From: Salpingoeca rosetta
Taxonomy: Eukaryota > Protista > Choanoflagellata
Assembly (NCBI GenBank): GCA_033442325.1
Contig: JAWQFM010000004.1
Location: 552,979-616,978 of the forward strand
DNA: 64,000 nucleotides
Reading direction: 5' to 3'
Shown: piece by piece, positions 5,735 to 24,029 of the stretch
How positions within the stretch are numbered: position 1 is the stretch's first letter
Layout of the letters: every line of letters begins with the position of its first letter
The notes under the pieces: generated by a model
What the model was told of the DNA's origin: nothing
The model's database searches: none
The model's input: only the letters and a program-made list of their open reading frames with translations
Position numbers and translations under genes: made by a program

Positions 5735-6982
5735 TCAGCACCCAGGGTCGATAACGAGGATGCCCTCGGCGTAAGATGGGATGCCGTAGATGAGGCCGTT
5801 CGGAGCAAGCACGCCATCAAACCACTTAGCAGATCCATCAAGAGCATTAATGGTTGTTGTGTCGGTGGCGTTGGTGGTTGGATCGAAGATGAGCACGGAA
5901 GGCGAGTTGTGTGGGATGCCGATGATGTTGCCGTTGGGTGCGAGCACGCCACCAACCCACTTGCCAAAGCTTGTTGCCTCCGCAACTTCGAGCTCGTTGG
6001 TGGCGTTGGTGGCTGGGTTGACGACGAGCATCGTCGCAGTGCCGTGTGGGATGGTGTAGATGAGGTCGTGGCCTACAAGCACGCCGCCATACCACTTGAC
6101 GTTTGTGCCGAGGTCGCTGATGGCTGTGAGGTCCATGGTGAGAGACTCTGGATTGATGATGAGAACGGAGGAAGCCCTCAAGGGAATGCAGTAGATAAGG
6201 CCGTTGTCTACCTGTACGCCTCCGTACCATTTAAACGTTTGGGTTGACAAACCAGACAGAGTGGTGATGTCAGCTGTGTTGGTCTTGGGGTCAATAATCA
6301 GCACAGAGGTGGCATGAATTGGGATGCCGAAGATGAGGCCGTTGCTAGCCACAACGCCACTGCGCCACTTGTAGCTGCCAGTACCAAGGGACTGGATGCT
6401 TGTCGTGTCAGCCGTGTTAGTGTCTGGGTCGATGATGAGCATCGTCTCCCTGTTTGAAGGGAACATGTAGACGAGGCCGTTGTGTGCCAACACAGCACCA
6501 GACCACTTTGCACCACCCGAAAGTAATCCGGAGATTGTGGTTGTGTCGACGGTGTTGCTGCTGGGGTCGACGATGAGGACGGAAGGAGAGTTGTGTGGCG
6601 CAGCGTAGATCAAACCGTTGTTCGCCGTCACGCCTCCAATCCACTTTCCACTTTGTGAACCGAGCTGCCCAAGCGTCGTGGCACTTGGGGTACACACTTT
6701 GCCACGGACACGGTCAATCGCCCTCTGCTGTGTTGACACGGTACTCATCAGCGTGTTGAGCGTCTCGTGCACATTCACCCCATTCACAAACACGGGCTGG
6801 CTCATAGGATCGCTGGTGTTGATGTGAAGCGCACCCGCATCATCCTCCACCAGCGTCACCTCTCCAACAACGCTGCTGAGGAGCGGCATCCAGCACACTG
6901 CCGCCGCCACCACCAGTAGCACGGGGAGCAGCACCAACCCACGTGCCTGCAGGCACCCCATCGTTCTCATCAGCGCCATCAT
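5735..6982 (-). CDS. Secreted ~7-bladed beta-propeller repeat protein, intronless
   Basis: Signal peptide, then an N-terminal GALHINTS..QPVFVNGVNV module and coiled coil, then 7 repeats of KWxGGVLAxNGLIYxIPxxxxSVLIIDPxTxT. Confidence 0.85.
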   Translation of the reverse strand: MMALMRTMGCLQARGLVLLPVLLVVAAAVCWMPLLSSVVGEVTLVEDDAGALHINTSDPMSQPVFVNGVNVHETLNTLMSTVSTQQRAIDRVRGKVCTPSATTLGQLGSQSGKWIGGVTANNGLIYAAPHNSPSVLIVDPSSNTVDTTTISGLLSGGAKWSGAVLAHNGLVYMFPSNRETMLIIDPDTNTADTTSIQSLGTGSYKWRSGVVASNGLIFGIPIHATSVLIIDPKTNTADITTLSGLSTQTFKWYGGVQVDNGLIYCIPLRASSVLIINPESLTMDLTAISDLGTNVKWYGGVLVGHDLIYTIPHGTATMLVVNPATNATNELEVAEATSFGKWVGGVLAPNGNIIGIPHNSPSVLIFDPTTNATDTTTINALDGSAKWFDGVLAPNGLIYGIPSYAEGILVIDPGC

Positions 6983-14274: not shown

Positions 14275-14969
14275 TCAAGCAAAGTGGTGGTCCTTGAGTT
14301 CTCCAAACGATGGTCGTTCACGCGGGTTCTGCGCCATGCACTTGTACGTCAGCGACTGGAACCACTCGGGGATGGCTAAGGAGAGAGTGGTGTGCATGTG
14401 TGTGTGAGTGAGAAGAGAGGACGTGCAAGCAATCCAAGGACACACACATGCACACACACACATACACACACACAACTCACCATCTTCTTCACCATCCTCG
14501 AATCGCAACCGCTTCCCATCCTTCATCAGGTTGCTGATGGTGGCGAGGATTGGTCCCCGATACCCACTCCCCTTCTCCTGCTCGATCAGATCAGGTTGTC
14601 GCTGCGTCCCCACCTCCCACATCAGCACGCCAAAGCTAAACACGTCTGCCTCGAAGCTGTACTTGTCGCCCGTCAGTGCCTCTGGTGCCATGTACAGTGG
14701 CGTACCCACACCAGCCGTCAGCGTTATGCTGGTCATCGTCTGCAGCCCAGCCTGCTGGCTGTACTGAGGGTAATCATCATGGCTGGAAGAGAGACTTGTG
14801 CGCTGCTGGTGCTGGTTTTTGTGTCGTGTGAAGCACTGGCGAATGGACCCAAAGTCCGTAATCTTGGCGCGAAGCGAAGCTGACACCAGCACGTTGCCGC
14901 TCTTCGAGTCCTTGTATAGTGGGTGGTGGATGGGTGGGTGGAGATGAAGGGTGAGCAGCAAACACGCGC

Positions 14970-15061
<92 letters not shown>

Positions 15062-16039
15062 TCACAAATATCCCACTCACCGGTGCAGCTGTTCGAGGCT
15101 GTGGATAAAGGCCATGTCACTCAGGCCACTCACAACATCAGAACATCGCGCAGCAATCGCTGCTTCAGATCCCACACAGTCATTGTCTCAACGCTTCTGT
15201 CGCGTCATGTGCTGACCAACATCAACTCCTCGCCCACGTGCCTCGTGGCCAGAAACCGTGAGGAACAGTACACCATTGATGTCAGCTCCATGGCTCCAGG
15301 GCACGAGCCATCAATGATGCTTTGCAGGGTGCACTGGCCAGCACGTTGTTCGTCGCTATCAGCGCGGCGCACGCGTGTGCATGAGGGGTGTGGTTGCGCG
15401 CTCCTGAGGATGGCAGCGCATGCCGTGTCTGGTTGAGATGGTCTGCCGTTGATGGGAGCTGGTTTCCCTTCAACACCGTTGCTGTTGCATCCAAAGGCGT
15501 TCATCATGCGTTGATCGATGACAGATCAATCGTGGTGGAAGGAGTGTTTCGTGGACGCAACTGCGCTGTGGCGAACGGCACGCGATGCTCCTTGAGCGCT
15601 GTTACCAGGTGTTTCAAAGTTGCGTCCACGGAGGGGACAGCGTGCGTTCCTTGGTGCTGTGAAACGGACGTGGAGAGGTGGAGAGAGGTGGGAATGTGGA
15701 GGTGTGAGTCGGTGGCAGCTGCAAGTGCAACCGTGAACAGAGCAGAAGGCACGTTGTGGCAAAGAACCAAAACACAAGGACAACAAGAGCAAGAAGCTAG
15801 ACACAGACACACAGACACACACACACACACTCACTCACTCACTCACTCACACACACTCACACACACACTCTCTCACTCACAGCATCCTTCAAGCAGCCGC
15901 TGCCATGGACACGAGTCACCGACTAGCCTGCCAATAACAACAGCAACAGTGGTGGCAACAGCGAGAACAGCGCCCAGCGATGATGAGGGCGAACAGCAGC
16001 AGCAGCAGCAGCAGCAGCTGGGAGAGGAGAAGGTCGCAT
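14275..16039 (-). pseudogene. Receptor-type TKL protein kinase pseudogene (signal peptide, ectodomain fragments, C-lobe)
   Basis: MAFIHSLEQLHR|DSKSGNVL..KITDFG..GTPLYMAPE..DVFSFGVLMWE..RPSF. Intron at 14376-14480. The N-lobe and most of the ectodomain are missing, and there are in-frame stops upstream. Confidence 0.8.
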
Positions 16040-17082: not shown

Positions 17083-17604
17083 TTACAGAAGGCACATGGC
17101 AAGGCTTCTCCATATGCCGTTGCTGGAAAAGAAGAAAACGCTCGTCTGCAAGTTACCTCGTCTGCACTCGCAAGTATGTGCTTCGTTTTCGAACATCGAG
17201 CCCAGCAAGTTGCCACAGCCAGACTGCGTGCGAATACCTGTACCGACGATCATCATGTGGGGTGGGACCTGTTCTGACTTGAGCTGACGAACGTCCTTGT
17301 CAAGTTCGTTGACGTTCAAGTCGTTAATGAAAACGTTCTGATTTGGGGGGGGGGAGGTGTTGATGCGCAAGTCACCATTGGTTTCCGTGAAATGATGCTG
17401 GATAAACGTTTTGAGGGTCTGGATATCACGGGCCATTTGCTTCACGCTGACGCCATTCACAAGCACATCTTGGTGTGGCTGACTTGTGTTGAGATGAAGG
17501 TTTCCACTCGAGTCAACAGCCAAATATGGATCACTGGCCACGTTGGCCGTGAGCATCGTGGTCACAACCACGAGCAAAAGCAAAGACAAGCACAAGGCGG
17601 GCAT
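17083..17604 (-). CDS. Small secreted protein with two copies of the G(N/D)L(H/R)xNTS..Q.V.(V/I)N + coiled-coil module
   Basis: Signal peptide MPALCLSLLLLVVVTTMLTA, an internal duplicated module and a Cys-containing tail; intronless. Confidence 0.7.
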   Translation of the reverse strand: MPALCLSLLLLVVVTTMLTANVASDPYLAVDSSGNLHLNTSQPHQDVLVNGVSVKQMARDIQTLKTFIQHHFTETNGDLRINTSPPPNQNVFINDLNVNELDKDVRQLKSEQVPPHMMIVGTGIRTQSGCGNLLGSMFENEAHTCECRRGNLQTSVFFFSSNGIWRSLAMCLL

Positions 17605-18458: not shown

Positions 18459-21400
18459 ATGACCACCACAGCGACTGTGACGCGAGTGACAGTGGACGAC
18501 CTGCAGCAGGCTGTGTCGACGTTTGGCCTGATGCGGGACGGCGAGCGACACGTGGTCACATTCTGCCATCAAGGTACACCACTGCTTGCTACGCCAACGC
18601 CTCCACCGACCCATGTCTGTTTGTATCCCTTGTGTCCGCGCACTCACGTACTCCCTCCCTCCCTCAACCCTGTTCACGGTGCTGGCTCGCGCACTGGCTT
18701 TGGTAGGCTCAAGGCTGTTTGAAGAAGGCGTGCGGTGTGGCCATGTGCTCACAAGAGTTGAGGCAGGAGATCCTGTGAAGGCAAATGAAGCATCTTTAGG
18801 TGTGGATGTCGCCGTAATACGTTTCGTGAGCGCAGAGCCAGTGACTCCCGCCCGTCTCATGGACCAAACCTTTGCGCAGAGGCGTAAGTCAATTGTTGCT
18901 CATCTCATGCTTGCTGACGCCTCATCGTGCTGCCTCTCCCCCCAATAACCCACAGTATGAACTGTCATCGACACCTCCCTACCACCAGCCCATGCACGCT
19001 ATGAACATCGTCTTGACGCGCTCACAATGACGTTGCTTGTACACCTGTGTGGTTAGTCCGAGGCCATCCTGCGACGCTTGTGTTCCAACACGTGCCCAGG
19101 CTACCTCCAGATGTCATACGCCGTCGAGACACCGACATGTGTCTCCTGTTGGCGCAATGCCTGAGCAACGGGGGCAGCAATCAAGAAGTGGCAATTCAAC
19201 GGCATTTCAACCAAAATCTCGACAAGCGCGACGGATACCACCAATTGAAGGAGGTTGCCTTCACACGCAATGCCGCTGAAAGTCACCACTTTACCGTCGC
19301 GTTTGGCAGCGACGATCCACTCAACGGCGAAGACACAACCCCAGTGTACATCTGCTTCCAGAGCACGCAGACGCTGCAACACGCCATGACGGACATGACG
19401 GCGTTTGCCCTTCCTCCGATGAGCGGGGCCATCGAGGGCCGTGTGCATGTGGGGTTTCTTCACGTGGCTGAGAAGATCCCCGTCGAGCCATTTGTGCGGT
19501 TGCTCCATGGCAGTCCAGGTGACAAAAAGAAGTACCGCTTGGTGTTTTGCGGCCACTCGCTCGGCGGTGCGCTGGCACAGCTGGTGGCGTTGCGCGTGCT
19601 GCTTGAGTGCCACCAGCGTGACGACCGCAGAAACGTGCACGTGGTGACGTTTGGCGCACCTCTTGTCGGAGACAGGGCTTTCGCGCAGCAGTTCGAGCGG
19701 GAGATTGGTGGTGCTGACGTGGCTCACAGCAACTGCCGGTTCCACGTGTACAACAACGACATTGTCCCACGCGTGCTGACGTTGCTCACCCGTGCATTCA
19801 GCTCCCAAGCAGATGCTCGTACGCGGTCGTCACTTGTCACGGAAGTTCTGAACAAGGCTTTCAACCAACCAGAGACCCACAGCTCGTTCTTCGATGGCAT
19901 CATGTCCGTCTTCTCGCGAAATGCGACAGGGAGTCTTTGGGTGACACTTGCAAGCTGTCTTCATTCCCTTGTGAAGCAATGTGTGGAGTGCGACTATTCG
20001 CCCTTTGGCACGTACCTGATTTATGAGGACTCACAATGGAAGCCATACAACAACCCAAATGAGATCCACGCCGCTTTGTTCAAGAACGACACACTTCCGC
20101 AGCTGAAGGCAGAGCTCCTCAAACATCACTTTCTGGACCACTATTGCCAGGGCCACCACTTCAATCGACACGCATGGTATCCGCAACAAACGTCCAAAGT
20201 CCCAACGTTCACCCAGCATCCCGACTTCTCCGCCCCTCGGAAGTTGATGTTCCAGTCAGACCACTCGAGCACGACGTCGACAGCCAACAGCCAACAGCAC
20301 CATCTCACATTCACTGGCGACGGGTTTGCGTTTGTCACGCACGTGACAAGCTCCCTTGATGGACATAGTTGCGAGTTCACGCCAGTGATTCTTGACGGAG
20401 GCAAGCGGCTGGAGGTGACGATTTCATGCACGACACAACAGGCAAAGGCCGTGTTTGATGTGCGACTTTACACCGTATTCACAGCGCCTGCGAGCACAGT
20501 GCCTGTCGATGTCACTCAACTCTCAAAGTTGCCCTTGTTTGGCAAGCTGGCGCAGGCCGCAAAGCTCTCACGTCACGACGTCATCAACCAAGTATGGTGC
20601 AGTTTGTGTGTGTGTGTGTCTGTGTGTGTGTGTGTGTCTGTCTGTGTGTGTGTGGAGGCGTGTGTGGTGCATTGATGTGTGCTCCACTGATCTGTGAGAT
20701 TTACCAAACCTCCAACGCTGACAGGCGTTTCGGCCATCACCTATACTCGCATGTGGCTTCTGCAGGCTTTTCTGCTCACCCTGTTCTCAGACGACAAGGA
20801 AAAACAAGAAAAGGTGCTTAGAATTCTGACTGAGCTGGAGGAAGGCGAAGTAACACCGGCTGCGAAGCGGTGGCACGAGAGTGACCAGGACGAGGCTGCA
20901 GCGGCCCTGCGCGAAGTCGTTGGCTCCACAATTTCGATCGAAGAACTCAAGTACCAGGACGAGCGCACAAAGCCACTGCAGAAGGCGATTCAAGTCATGG
21001 CCGAACAAGAGGGTGGAGGCCGAGGTTTCGGTGCTTTGACAGACGCAAGCAAGGAGGTGCTTGGGCGGGACGCCACCAACGCGAAGGCTTTTGCGGATAA
21101 AATGAGGGATGCAGGTGAGGATGTGTGTGTTTGTGTGTGTTTGTTTGTGCGAGTATGTGTGGTTGCGTTGTTGCCGTGGGTTTGGTGTGGGCGTTTCATC
21201 GGAACAAGGCCTGCGCAGGAATTGTTCCTGTGTAGATGCTTGGGTTCTTCCTGTGGAACGCTTCTATGTGAATTCACATCAGTTGCTGGTCCACGTGCGA
21301 TTTTGTACGTGGTTCATGGTGTTCCTGAAAGTGCGCAAGTATCAAGTGTATGATCCACCCGCTGGAGAAACATATGCAGACAGGCACGAACAACGGTTGC

Positions 21401-23417
21401 CGTACAAACGCGCCTCAGAATGGTTCCGGAGTGACAAGAGCACGTGTGCACAGGATGCGCTGCGGGCAGTTTCGTGGTCAACACTGGACGTGCTCGCGCG
21501 TACGGGGTATCCAGACATTGCCGTGAAGAAGGGGCCTGGCATTATCGCGCTAACCACTGCCATCACTATCGTCATGGCTGGCCTCGCCGTCTTTTCACTT
21601 CTTGGGATTGTTGCGGGCATCTATGACCTGAGTTTGGAGGTTGGCGGCCTTACCATGCTGACAGGCAGCGTCAGTGCTTTTCTGCTTGCTGGCGTACTTG
21701 GCAAAGTTCTCGCAAAACTCAACGAGAATCAGGCGGAATACCAGAAGAATCTTCAGGTGTGGTGTTGTGGGCATGCTTGTGTGCGTGTGTTGATGTGCTT
21801 GTGTGTGTGTGTGTGTGTGTGTGTGCGTGCGTGCGTGCGTGTTTGCTCGTTGGTGTTTGCATGCGTGCGTGTGCAACAAAGTATGTGTGCACGTGCATGC
21901 ATGGACGCCATTGCATTTTCATTCGCAGCATGTCAGCACACAGCTCACAACACGTGTACTGCACATGCACCAACGTACACACGCACACGCAAATCACCCA
22001 CTGCTATGGTACCAAAACAGTTAATGCTTCAACTACTTGGACTAGATGAGGAAAAGGATTTGCCGCTGGACCCAACGTACTTTGCTGAGAAGGCCATTGT
22101 GCAAAAGGGGATTGCGCAGAAGATGAAAGTGATTGTGGGCCACAGCATCGACCCAGCCGCCCTCATGTCTGCGGAATTCCGGGCCAAGTATTTCTCCAAG
22201 CTCAAGCAAGGCGATCCCCTGTACAACGTAACAGACGACGACACAGCGCGCAAGCGGGCGCTGCTGTTCCTCCGCGACGTGTGGCTCATCTTCCGCCTGC
22301 GAAAAGTGCTCGCCGGCACGTTTATGTTTGGCGTTGTCGGAACCACCAAGACGGGCAAGGTGTGTGCTTGTGTGTACGTGCGCGTGTGTGCATGAGCTTG
22401 CATGGGAGGCGCTTCCAATGCGTCTGCGAACTCCTGCAAACACTCATTTGTTCACTCCACCCTGGCGTCATGCGTGACATGCGTTCTTCACTTCAGAGCA
22501 CGTTCCTCTCTCGGCTCAAATTCAAGTCCAACCCCGATTCTGCCGTCAACTCGACGCGCATTGAGTTCTACAAGTGGCCCGCCGCCCGGCACTTTGTCTT
22601 TGTTGATTTTCCGGGCAGCGACGACGCAACCAAGAAGGTGTGGCATGCCTGTAGTTACTGCTGCTGATGCTGCTGCTGCTGCTGCTGCTGTTGTTGTTGT
22701 TGTTGCTGATGATGTTGTTGAAAGGGGCGAATAGCGTTTGACGTGTTGCGGTGTATGTATTGGCTCCCTCACATGTCTCGACATCTCGGTTGTTTTGCAT
22801 ATCCATCCAATTACAGGTCGAGGAGGCGTTTGCTGCGCACTATTCGATCGTCGATGCCTGCATCTTCGTCGTTGAGGCAGACAAGCCAAACACCGCACGT
22901 GTCAAGGACGCACTCCTGGCAGCTCTCCGACGAGAGGTACGAACTGTTTTGTGAATGTGTGTGTGAATGTGTGCATGTGTGTGTGTGTGTGCGCGTGCAT
23001 GTGTGTGTGTGTGTGTACGTGTGGTTTTGTGTGTGAATGTGTGTGCAACTCAAATATCTCAAGGCCACTTTGAGACCTGCATTGATGTTTCGTCACCCAC
23101 CACCCGTGACATGGATGCAGGTGCCCATTTTGCTGTGTTTGAACAAGGCGGACTTGCTGCTCCCGCGCCCTCTTCAGCAACAACAGGATGAACTGCCGAT
23201 TGCTCAGTCACCAGACTCTGCTGCAGCCGAGGTGACCTCTCCAGTGGACGATGGCGACGATGATGATGATGATGACGGATATGATGATTTCGAGGAGCTT
23301 GGCCCTTTGGTACGAGTCGTGTCATTGACTGGGTGCACGCACGCACACACAAGCACACGTCAACATGCATGCACGCACACGCGTGTGCGTGAGGCTAGCC
23401 AGAGAGCGAGTGCCGCT

Positions 23418-23475
<58 letters not shown>

Positions 23476-23890
23476 ACACGTACGACAGTATCTTCTGACG
23501 CTTCTCACTGCATGGGTCTGTTTTGTGTTCTGGGTTGTCGTGGTGCAGACACCGTTGCGTACACAGGAAGAGCTGCACGATATCCTGCGGAAGAAGATAC
23601 AGCTGACCCTAGGAGGCGCCAATCCACACGTGACCATCGACAAGGAGTCTGGCCTCCACACTGTCGAAGTGCAACGCGCGTCTGAAGACAAGCAGGCGTT
23701 CTCAACATGCCTGACGTGTTTTGCACCGCACCTTGGTCCAGTAGTGAAGCCTTCGGACCTCCAAGAACGCGCCATCTTCACGCCAAAGGTCGTCTTGGAG
23801 CAGTGGCTCTTCCCCACGCTCAAGGCGTGCGAGATTCCCGTGGAGGAACCAGAGTACAAGGAAATCCTCGCCTACCTCAGGCGACGATAG
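18459..23890 (+). CDS. Class-3 lipase - TM hairpin - P-loop GTPase fusion protein (~10 exons, ~1,240 aa), possible PDZ-like N-terminus
   Basis: Lipase motifs [32 protein letters not shown]. Hydrophobic stretch at 21540-21715. GTPase motifs G1 GTTKTGK|S, G3 DFPG, G4 NKAD. GT-AG introns join the exons in frame up to TAG at 23888-23890. Confidence 0.85.
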
Positions 23891-23952
23891 TGGTGTGTGT
23901 GTGTGTGTCTGTGTGTGTGTCTGTGTGTGTGTGTGTGTGTGTGTCTGTGTGT

Positions 23953-24029
<77 letters not shown>

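Follow-up and report, generated by a model that had tools for sequence, protein, structure and literature searches.

A Salpingoeca rosetta gene predicted to join a class-3 lipase, a hydrophobic hairpin and a GTPase in one protein, and its uncharacterised eukaryotic relatives

Gene PTSG_02605 of the choanoflagellate Salpingoeca rosetta lies on the forward strand of the 64,000-nt stretch of contig JAWQFM010000004.1 that was analysed here (the window, to which all positions refer unless another contig is named). It is a real, transcribed gene, and comparison with its relatives indicates that it is a single one, with a class-3 lipase, a hydrophobic two-helix hairpin and a GTPase encoded in one protein. 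Such lipase-hairpin-GTPase proteins form a eukaryotic family that is old and widespread but uncharacterised, and whose members have kept this set of features jointly. The explanation that we favour, with somewhat better than even confidence, is that this is a genuine fusion gene for a cytosolic lipase that is anchored by its hairpin and switched, or positioned, by its own GTPase. Public annotation has listed the gene, with both of its InterPro domains, since 2013; what is missing there is a function.

The open frame runs from an ATG at 18459 to a TAG at 23888-23890 through ten exons, all with GT..AG boundaries and in consistent phases, as the initial annotation of this locus had noted of the phases. 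The translations of all ten exons occur verbatim, and in the same order, in the public record P0023 (PTSG_02605; XP_004996102.1; UniProt F2U2S5; 1243 amino acids (aa)), which was returned by a representative search with exon 3, and which the databases name ‘hypothetical protein’ or ‘Fungal lipase-like domain-containing protein’. The sole mismatch with the annotation concerns the acceptor of exon 5, annotated at 21332 rather than 21347; the 15 nt upstream add five residues (VRKYQ). Searches were run for each exon, and whole-protein analyses used P0023, whose residue numbering is followed throughout.

Could two adjacent genes, one for a lipase and the other for a transmembrane GTPase, have been misread as one? 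The two parts are set apart by three introns and a poorly conserved linker exon, and the one-transcript reading here comes from annotation and comparison. Against such a misreading, all ten exons are colinear, at 64-100% aa identity, in two paralogues on contig C25, L007 (which is PTSG_09189) and L008, and exons 3-10 are colinear at 36-79% aa identity in a third, L009. In P0001, a 48% identical relative from another organism, the open frame breaks off precisely where exon 3 of the window gene ends. A division into two genes is matched by no stop in frame and by no second start, and the RNA-seq-informed public annotation shows one gene. More distant relatives hold both domains without any intervening intron: a Lipase_3 domain and an MMR_HSR1-type GTPase share one uninterrupted open reading frame (ORF) of 1116 aa in the distant S. 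rosetta paralogue L010, and one of 1138 aa in a metagenomic relative (L011/P0024), while complete transcriptome ORFs of Cavostelium, Paulinella and Stygamoeba also have both domains in one protein. Because distant relatives carry lipase and GTPase together in this way, we take the fusion not to be an artefact of the gene model, and the two-gene alternative to be highly improbable.

How far the family extends was seen from several searches. When 1.84 billion representatives were searched with exon 3, only two matches fell below 1e-30, namely the window gene itself and P0001, and many proteins of 900-1250 aa matched the lipase at 1e-27 to 1e-8. Using phmmer with aa 851-1243, we found that 25 other retrieved proteins share the stalk-GTPase module (E 1e-247 to 1e-4, and down to 6e-31 outside S. 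rosetta), and BLASTP comparisons with P0024 and P0027 aligned the lipase half and the GTPase half each. A shared-word search with exon 3 returned only the close fragment P0001 and distant lipases, its length window excluding relatives of 1243 aa; the same kind of search with P0023 aa 610-1243 returned only the protein itself and PTSG_09189, because the C-terminal half is too divergent for many words to be shared. The window gene has the family's defining combination of an intact-triad Lipase_3 domain with a homologous stalk and C-terminal G domain in one polypeptide.

Members were found among Amoebozoa (Cavostelium apophysatum and Stygamoeba regulata), Fungi (Basidiobolus ranarum), Rhizaria (Paulinella chromatophora) and Discoba (the heterolobosean Willaertia magna), and among animals in Hydra vulgaris, the annelid Owenia fusiformis, the amphioxus Branchiostoma (two clusters) and the rotifers Didymodactylos, Adineta and Brachionus; many further members are unnamed metagenomic proteins. 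The initial annotation had supposed that similar uncharacterised proteins might exist in plants or oomycetes. Similar proteins do exist, in animals, Amoebozoa, Fungi, Rhizaria and Discoba, but no plant or oomycete is among the named members.

In an alignment of 26 family sequences, with a mean column identity of 18%, the invariant residues are H228, G230, G263, S265, G267, P299, D332, G415, H455 and Y460 in the lipase half and R961, G974, G979 and K980 in the stalk and GTPase, with S981, D1017, P1019 and E890 present in at least 90% of members. The GTPase motifs divide the family into groups: that of the window gene has canonical DFPG and NKxD motifs, a second has DFPH, and an animal group has a degenerate G4 (xQCG, SHCG). 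A quick tree, with long branches, places the window gene with P0024, P0034/P0051, P0025 and L010 (Shimodaira-Hasegawa-like approximate likelihood-ratio test (SH-aLRT) 90-92).

The lipase is encoded by exon 3 (19057..20591; aa 99-609). Its Lipase_3 match (PF01764; 19350..19781, aa 196-339) reached an E-value of 1.2e-22 with exon 3 alone and 79.5-80.8 bits against a cut-off of 22 (79.5 with the whole protein), and holds the nucleophile Ser265 in GHSLGG (19557-19559) and Asp332 in NNDIVP (19758-19760). The complete set of class-3 lipase motifs that had been read from the sequence at the outset is present, and the histidine then offered as a candidate is His455 (20127..20129) in KHHFLDHY, an HxxxxY motif of which H455 and Y460 are the conserved ends; all three triad residues are invariant in the 26 members. 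The domain is apparently an active serine acyl-hydrolase. It might instead be a non-catalytic scaffold or ligand sensor, as in the plant proteins EDS1, PAD4 and SAG101, with the GTPase as the sole enzyme of the protein. EDS1 and PAD4 are indeed its best structural and profile matches, and EDS1 itself retains a triad which is dispensable for EDS1 signalling. However, the invariance of Ser, Asp, His and the GxSxG glycines in 26 highly divergent members is hard to explain without catalysis, and the EP domain of the EDS1 family is lacking, so that we consider a purely structural or sensory lipase domain very unlikely.

The likeness to EDS1 is one of fold. An AlphaFold model of exon 3 (predicted local distance difference test score (pLDDT) 78.9; predicted template modelling score (pTM) 0.82) has a lipase fold followed by a beta-sandwich, and its best structural match in VIA-align is EDS1 (4nfu_A; Z 21.8, root-mean-square deviation (rmsd) 3.4 Å, 264 aa), with a second EDS1 match at Z 20.9 (EDS1 rmsd 3.4-3.8) and with fungal lipases and feruloyl esterase at Z 17-19.5. 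The top 15 Foldseek matches of the model are all EDS1 chains. Searched against the PDB, the single sequence matched Rhizopus lipase at 2e-10 and EDS1 at 4e-10 (fungal range 2e-10 to 4e-8), and the family profile matched PAD4 at 1.9e-26, EDS1 at 9.5e-25 and Rhizopus lipase at 1.9e-24. His455 falls within the segment aligned to EDS1, and a long helical insertion of about 120 aa between the catalytic Asp and His is shared with EDS1; in fungal lipases (Rhizomucor lipase) the Asp-His spacing is about 55 aa.

With plant EDS1, PAD4 and SAG101 (PDB 4nfu, 8b28, 8zf0) the domain has in common the class-3 alpha/beta-hydrolase fold and the long helical Asp-His insertion. In contrast to them, the window protein strictly keeps its triad, continues after the lipase into a beta-sandwich, a hairpin and a GTPase, and gives no sign of sensing nucleotide ligands or of forming heterodimers; Pfam did not find the EP domain (PF18117) after the lipase, where the beta-sandwich stands instead. 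We rejected membership of the EDS1 family, given the missing EP domain, the invariant triad and a lead over fungal lipases that is modest, and describe the domain, as modelled, as an EDS1-like class-3 lipase fold outside that family. Fungal lipases and the feruloyl esterase FaeA (Rhizomucor miehei 3tgl/4tgl, Rhizopus 6a0w, Aspergillus FaeA 1uwc) share with it the Lipase_3 domain, the GxSxG elbow and the Ser-Asp-His order; they are small, secreted, single-domain enzymes, whereas the window protein, of 1243 aa, is multidomain and predicted to face the cytosol.

The Ig-like or E-set-like beta-sandwich that follows (20220..20525; aa 486-587), with strands at exon-3 residues 394-484 of the model, matched E-set, IPT and Ig-type domains at VIA Z 7-7.8, inside the noise band of the tool. 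Strong matches to this middle region came only from P0169 and P0001, with one weak match to P0041 (E 1.4e-4), and the sandwich appears confined to the S. rosetta clade and to P0001, which is closest to it. The lipase has other partners elsewhere: related lipases occur in LRR + C2 + Lipase_3 giants of 1900-2300 aa (P0036, P0094), and in other matches the partner of Lipase_3 is a TPR domain (Symbiochloris), a caspase-like peptidase C14 or a SAM domain. The lipase is in that sense a module that is often shuffled.

Between lipase and GTPase, exon 4 (20766..21114; aa 610-725) encodes a charged, acidic and probably helical linker, which of all exons is the least conserved among the paralogues (74-75% aa), and exon 5 (21347..21756; aa 732-867) encodes the hairpin. 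A two-helix hydrophobic hairpin had been noticed initially, and hydropathy analysis places it at aa 793-853 (21532..21714): two Kyte-Doolittle peaks, at aa 793-829 and 829-853, rich in Gly, Ala, Ser and Thr, with a short DLSLE turn between them and a 19-aa maximum of 2.48. This is the sole hydrophobic region of the protein. An equivalent hydrophobic, Gly-rich segment, about 100 aa before the P-loop and G domain, is present in about 20 of the 26 family members, and the hairpin is thus a feature of the family rather than a peculiarity of the window gene.

No signal-peptide-like hydrophobic stretch was seen by hydropathy at the N-terminus, where exon 1 (18459..18573; aa 1-38 plus one base, with the start codon at 18459) and exon 2 (18707..18883; aa 40-97) together encode a small domain. 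This domain matches only P0169 and is confined to close S. rosetta paralogues, exon 1 being 81-92% conserved in aa in L007 and L008. The initial annotation had noted a possible PDZ-like start. A PDZ domain was sought and no Pfam match was found even at E 10; an ESM-Atlas look-up of aa 1-110 gave PDZ clusters at 0.93, 0.92 and 0.88 with fewer than 150 shared features, which by the calibration of that tool is a lead only.

A GTPase with G1, G3 and G4 motifs had been read from the sequence at the start; all three are there, and G5 and the switch-I Thr can be added. Exon 6 (22021..22359; aa 868-980) encodes a helical stalk with the conserved Glu890 and, at the end of a stalk helix, the invariant Arg961 (22300-22302), and ends within the P-loop (G974-K980, 22339-22359). 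Exon 7 (22497..22637; aa 981-1027) supplies the P-loop Ser981 (22497-22499), which completes G1 (GTTKTGKS, 974-981), the switch-I Thr and G3 (DFPG; aa 1017-1020, 22605-22616). The G-domain core from G3 to G4 is encoded by exon 8 (22817..22936; aa 1028-1067). Exon 9 (23121..23309; aa 1068-1130) carries G4 (NKAD; aa 1075-1078, 23142-23153) and then a poly-acidic insertion (aa 1082-1130, about 23163-23309), and exon 10 (23549..23890; aa 1131-1243 plus stop) carries G5 (TCF; aa 1186-1188, 23714-23722) and the C-terminal helices. Core exons 7 and 8 are the most conserved against the close paralogues (98-100% identical; exon 7 is 98% identical in paralogues and exon 8 100% identical to L007). The poly-acidic insertion differs between paralogues and is not conserved even in those that are 90% identical, exon 9 aligning over its first 42 of 63 residues only.

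In Pfam, MMR_HSR1 matched aa 971-1076 with 35.2 bits (cut-off 21.9) and GTP_EFTU matched aa 998-1089 with 41.6 bits (cut-off 26.5), while Dynamin_N reached 16.9 bits, below its cut-off of 27, and the IIGP, GBP and AIG1 profiles gave no match even at E 10. The best PDB matches of the GTPase by sequence are EngA, Der, EngB and Era; with the family profile, EngA/Der matched at 3e-17 in two stretches, EngB and Era followed, and Irgb6 matched at 4.3e-9, including part of the stalk. For the structure of the G domain, which in the window gene is spread over five exons, a proxy was used, the module of P0024 (L011:2361-3422), which is about 28% identical to P0023 over 302 aa. The model of this proxy (pLDDT 84.5) has a four-helix stalk packed before strand 1, a compact, Era-sized G domain and C-terminal helices. 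In VIA-align it matched EngB at Z 16.2, IF2, Era and EngA at 14.5-15.6, EHD4 at 14.8, mitofusin 2 at 14.2 over 248 residues including the stalk and LeoA at 12.9 over 221 residues, the mitofusin and LeoA alignments having an rmsd of 5.5-6.2 Å. MFN2, MFN1, Fzo1, LeoA, IniA and SynDLP are all among its structural matches. Foldseek did not discriminate, G-alpha, Irga6/IIGP1 and mitofusin 1 all scoring 2e-7 to 1.4e-6; Irga6 stood at ranks 2, 8 and 13 for stalk plus G domain, and mitofusin 1 aligned over 337 columns. ESM-Atlas gave bacterial dynamin, MMR_HSR1 and IIGP-type clusters at 0.92-0.93, again as a lead only.

Taken by sequence, then, the GTPase is best described as a TRAFAC G domain of generic, Era/EngB-like type, to which a stalk peculiar to this family is added. 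Membership of the dynamin superfamily was rejected, on the Dynamin_N score and on a G domain which is Era-sized rather than about 300 aa. Membership of the IRG/p47, GBP or GIMAP families was rejected as no profile matched and Irga6 and Irgb6 scored no better than generic GTPases, and an atlastin- or mitofusin-type protein was rejected on the order of parts, which here is lipase, hairpin, stalk and small GTPase. A kinship to IRG or mitofusin may exist.

The relation to each of these groups can be stated as likeness and difference. Era, EngA (Der), EngB (YihA) and IF2 share the MMR_HSR1 and GTP_EFTU matches and lack a Gln after DxxG, as the window protein does; they are soluble and ribosome-associated, whereas the window domain follows a membrane hairpin, as predicted, and a helical stalk that is conserved, has a Lys at P-loop position 4 and has an acidic insertion between G4 and G5. 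Atlastin, Sey1, mitofusin/Fzo1 and the bacterial dynamin-like proteins likewise combine a two-helix hairpin anchor with an adjacent helical bundle and G domain, and atlastin has a basic residue at P-loop position 4; here, in contrast, the hairpin is N-terminal to the GTPase (the reversed order), the G domain is small and a lipase is attached. The IRG (Irga6/Irgb6), GBP and GIMAP proteins have in common with it a helical N-terminal extension and a G domain, but the window protein would be permanently anchored by its predicted hairpin and is fused to a hydrolase.

No Gln follows DxxG in the window protein (DFPGS), and the position is variable in the family. Position 4 of the P-loop is K or R in 13 of the 26 members, with Lys in the window protein, and N in nine. 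In GBP1 and atlastin this position provides a cis arginine finger; in K+-dependent GTPases such as MnmE and FeoB, an Asn at the same position binds the cation, and all of these are activated by nucleotide-dependent dimerisation. The absence of the Gln, together with K, R or N at position 4, suggests that the GTPase most likely cycles by nucleotide-dependent dimerisation and not through an external GTPase-activating protein (GAP). The invariant Arg961, 13 residues ahead of the P-loop at the stalk helix end, may, together with P-loop position 4, also bear on the activation of GTP hydrolysis.

We propose that the hairpin most probably fixes the protein to a membrane inside the cell, with lipase and GTPase both in the cytosol; a cytosol-facing anchorage of this kind is suggested because there is no signal peptide and the two predicted membrane helices are adjacent. 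The lipase would then be an active serine acyl-hydrolase acting on lipids of the same, or of a closely apposed, membrane, and the cycle of the GTPase, probably driven by dimerisation rather than by a GAP, would switch or position it. GTPase-regulated phospholipases acting in trans are well known, as in Arf/Rho with phospholipase D1 (PLD1), G-alpha-q with phospholipase C-beta (PLC-beta) and Rab5 with Legionella VipD. Common to these and to the proposed mechanism is the principle that a GTP-bound switch turns on a membrane lipid hydrolase; the difference is that here switch and hydrolase are in one polypeptide, with a coupling that we infer, and that the hydrolase is a class-3 lipase and not a PLD, PLC or patatin. 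The window protein would be, in effect, a built-in (cis) form of Arf acting on phospholipase D or of Rab5 acting on VipD. A GTP-controlled lipase seems to us the most economical reading of the conserved fusion.

Several points weigh against this proposal. The coupling of GTPase to lipase is deduced only from the conserved fusion. The membrane hairpin is predicted from hydropathy; the segment might instead be monotopic, belong to the lipid-droplet type of hairpin or lie buried as a core. The fold of the G domain comes from the model of the P0024 proxy, only about 28% identical, and the Lys finger that may operate in the window GTPase is suggested by the parallel with GBP1 and atlastin. Given the degenerate G4 of the animal group, some members of the family may have a domain that does not act as a switch specific for guanine. 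Expression of PTSG_02605 is low, and a literature search found no functional, biochemical, localisation or genetic study of any family member; PTSG_02605 itself was named in no paper found beyond expression tables, and the mSphere 2025 supplements do not list it.

The expression tables do give one hint of context. The supplements of Fairclough et al. 2013 (PMC4054682) list PTSG_02605 with both InterPro domains, with fragments per kilobase of transcript per million mapped reads (FPKM) of 18.2, 3.7 and 2.9 in three samples of attached cells, 1.7 in swimmers and 0.4-3.7 in colonies and chains, and with an attached/colony log2 ratio of 2.85 (P 2e-8). Expression of the gene is thus real but low, and attached cells have the more of it. 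Summed over exons, the ratio of non-synonymous to synonymous substitution (dN/dS) is about 0.29 against both close paralogues, with dS about 0.19, and therefore both halves of the protein are under purifying selection.

These data bear on where such a lipase might act. The initial annotation had suggested a phagosomal or defence phospholipase, by analogy with GTPases that attack pathogen membranes, and it is conceivable that the protein is a cell-autonomous defence effector at the phagosome or pathogen vacuole, where GTP would unleash the lipase on the membrane in the manner of IRG, GBP or GIMAP proteins. S. rosetta is a bacterivore; the family is patchy and lineage-expanded, with at least five S. 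rosetta loci, two amphioxus clusters and several copies in rotifers; the nearest solved structures to the lipase are those of EDS1 and PAD4, which act in plant immunity; Foldseek ranks Irga6/IIGP1 near the top for stalk plus G domain, and Irgb6 is found at 4e-9 by the family profile; and some relatives carry SAM domains. However, no specific IRG, GBP or GIMAP signature is present (no Pfam IIGP, GBP or AIG1 match), and the matches to EngA, EngB, Era and IF2 equal or surpass those to IRG. Fungal lipases, too, come close behind EDS1 (Z 19.5 after 21.8; profile E 1.9e-24 after 1.9e-26), an arms race is not indicated by a dN/dS of 0.29, and, no infection or prey-response expression data having been found, the sole expression signal is the low-level rise in attached cells. 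The hairpin, moreover, ties the protein to one membrane, so that it could not roam like a GBP or IRG. A defence or phagosome role is therefore possible, its analogy to IRG and GBP being weakened by the dN/dS of 0.29 and the non-specific type of GTPase, and we hold it to be improbable as it stands.

About equally likely is a role in remodelling or tethering organelle membranes (endoplasmic reticulum, mitochondrial or lipid-droplet), as for atlastin, Sey1 or mitofusin, with the lipase editing lipids locally in a housekeeping or cell-state function. The juxtaposition of a hairpin with a helical bundle and G domain recalls the fusion GTPases, and mitofusin 2, mitofusin 1 and LeoA align with the proxy over the lengths given above, the first of them with the stalk included; the paralogues are under purifying selection, and the gene is up in attached, theca-building cells. 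Yet the order of domains is reversed, the hairpin coming before the GTPase; the G domain is Era-sized and not dynamin-sized, with Dynamin_N below its cut-off; the mitofusin and LeoA alignments have the high rmsd noted; and the absence of the family from standard model organisms speaks against a core housekeeping role. We regard this role too as a minority prospect.

Our favoured reading of a hairpin-anchored lipase under the control of its own GTPase could be extended further. At its broadest, the family might represent an ancient class of self-contained GTP-gated membrane lipases, a cis counterpart of Arf-PLD and Rab5-VipD, which the standard model organisms would have lost and which choanoflagellates, cnidarians, amphioxus, annelids, rotifers, amoebae and others would have retained, which in phagotrophs would serve cell-autonomous defence or work at the food vacuole, and whose lipase would be the nearest non-plant relative of the EDS1/PAD4 domain. 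We offer this only as a speculation, which we think is rather unlikely to hold in full.

To our knowledge, GTPase-switched lipases, which recur in signalling and in infection, always do so as two proteins. In the family described here both enzymes and their own anchor appear to be in one polypeptide, with catalytic residues kept from amoebae to amphioxus, and this co-conservation points to a real, selected coupling of GTPase and lipase. S. rosetta is genetically tractable and has few copies, so the effect of the built-in GTPase on the lipase is directly testable there; and the closeness of the lipase fold to EDS1/PAD4 may help to trace the origin of that plant immune scaffold.

Within the 55.4-Mb, 68-contig S. 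rosetta assembly that we searched, there are about a dozen Lipase_3 loci, at least five of which belong to the lipase-GTPase group: the window gene and four on C25. The two close copies, L007 and L008, are 84-88% identical to it in nucleotides over the whole gene, introns included, and are recent segmental duplicates. L008 (C25:223800-230800, minus strand) has, relative to the window gene, three single-base insertions within or at the end of its exon-8 equivalent (about L008:1860-1975), by which some 14 codons between G3 and G4 are put out of frame and no stop arises; it may be a decaying copy, or the insertions may be homopolymer errors of the assembly, and protein searches returned no 1243-aa protein for this copy.

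L010, about 11 kb from the L008 copy, is of a different build. Its single exon (L010:2695-6045, minus strand; C25 about 214195-217545) encodes Lipase_3 at aa 110-240 and an MMR_HSR1-like GTPase at aa 901-1005, without introns and without a hairpin that is clear by hydropathy. It shares with the window gene the Lipase_3 domain and the C-terminal MMR_HSR1-type GTPase, and the quick tree groups the two (SH-aLRT 90). When exon 6 was compared with the L010 ORF by BLASTP, no significant similarity was found, and homology of the G modules is visible only via P0024 and the family alignment. Compared with the other S. rosetta lipase-GTPase genes, the Ig-like sandwich and the clear hairpin are additions of the window gene and of the three paralogues nearest to it, and the small N-terminal domain is an addition of the window gene and its two closest copies alone.

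The neighbours of PTSG_02605, which the initial annotation had called ruined, are listed as ordinary genes in the 2013 annotation, namely PTSG_02604 (kinase) and PTSG_02606 (C48 peptidase). An ORF at 14275-15120 (minus strand) encodes a fragment of a protein kinase domain (Pkinase E 1.7e-18); PTSG_02604 probably includes it as an exon. Just upstream of PTSG_02605, an ORF of 173 aa at 17083-17604 (minus strand), for which no Pfam match was found, begins like a signal peptide and contains two repeats (…LHLNTSQPHQDVLVNGVSVKQMARDIQTLK / …LRINTSPPPNQNVFINDLNVNELDKDVRQLK), and farther away an ORF at 5735-6982 (minus strand) encodes a DUF6923 repeat (E 3.5e-7). Five of the nine introns of PTSG_02605 contain (TG)n-type microsatellites on the coding strand (20605-20654, 21122-21149, 21774-21873, 22950-23045 and 23420-23472), and another lies in the 3′ flank (23893-24028). 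In several introns the (TG)n run begins at or near the GT donor; intron 7 has instead a CTG/TGT trinucleotide run at 22658-22720.

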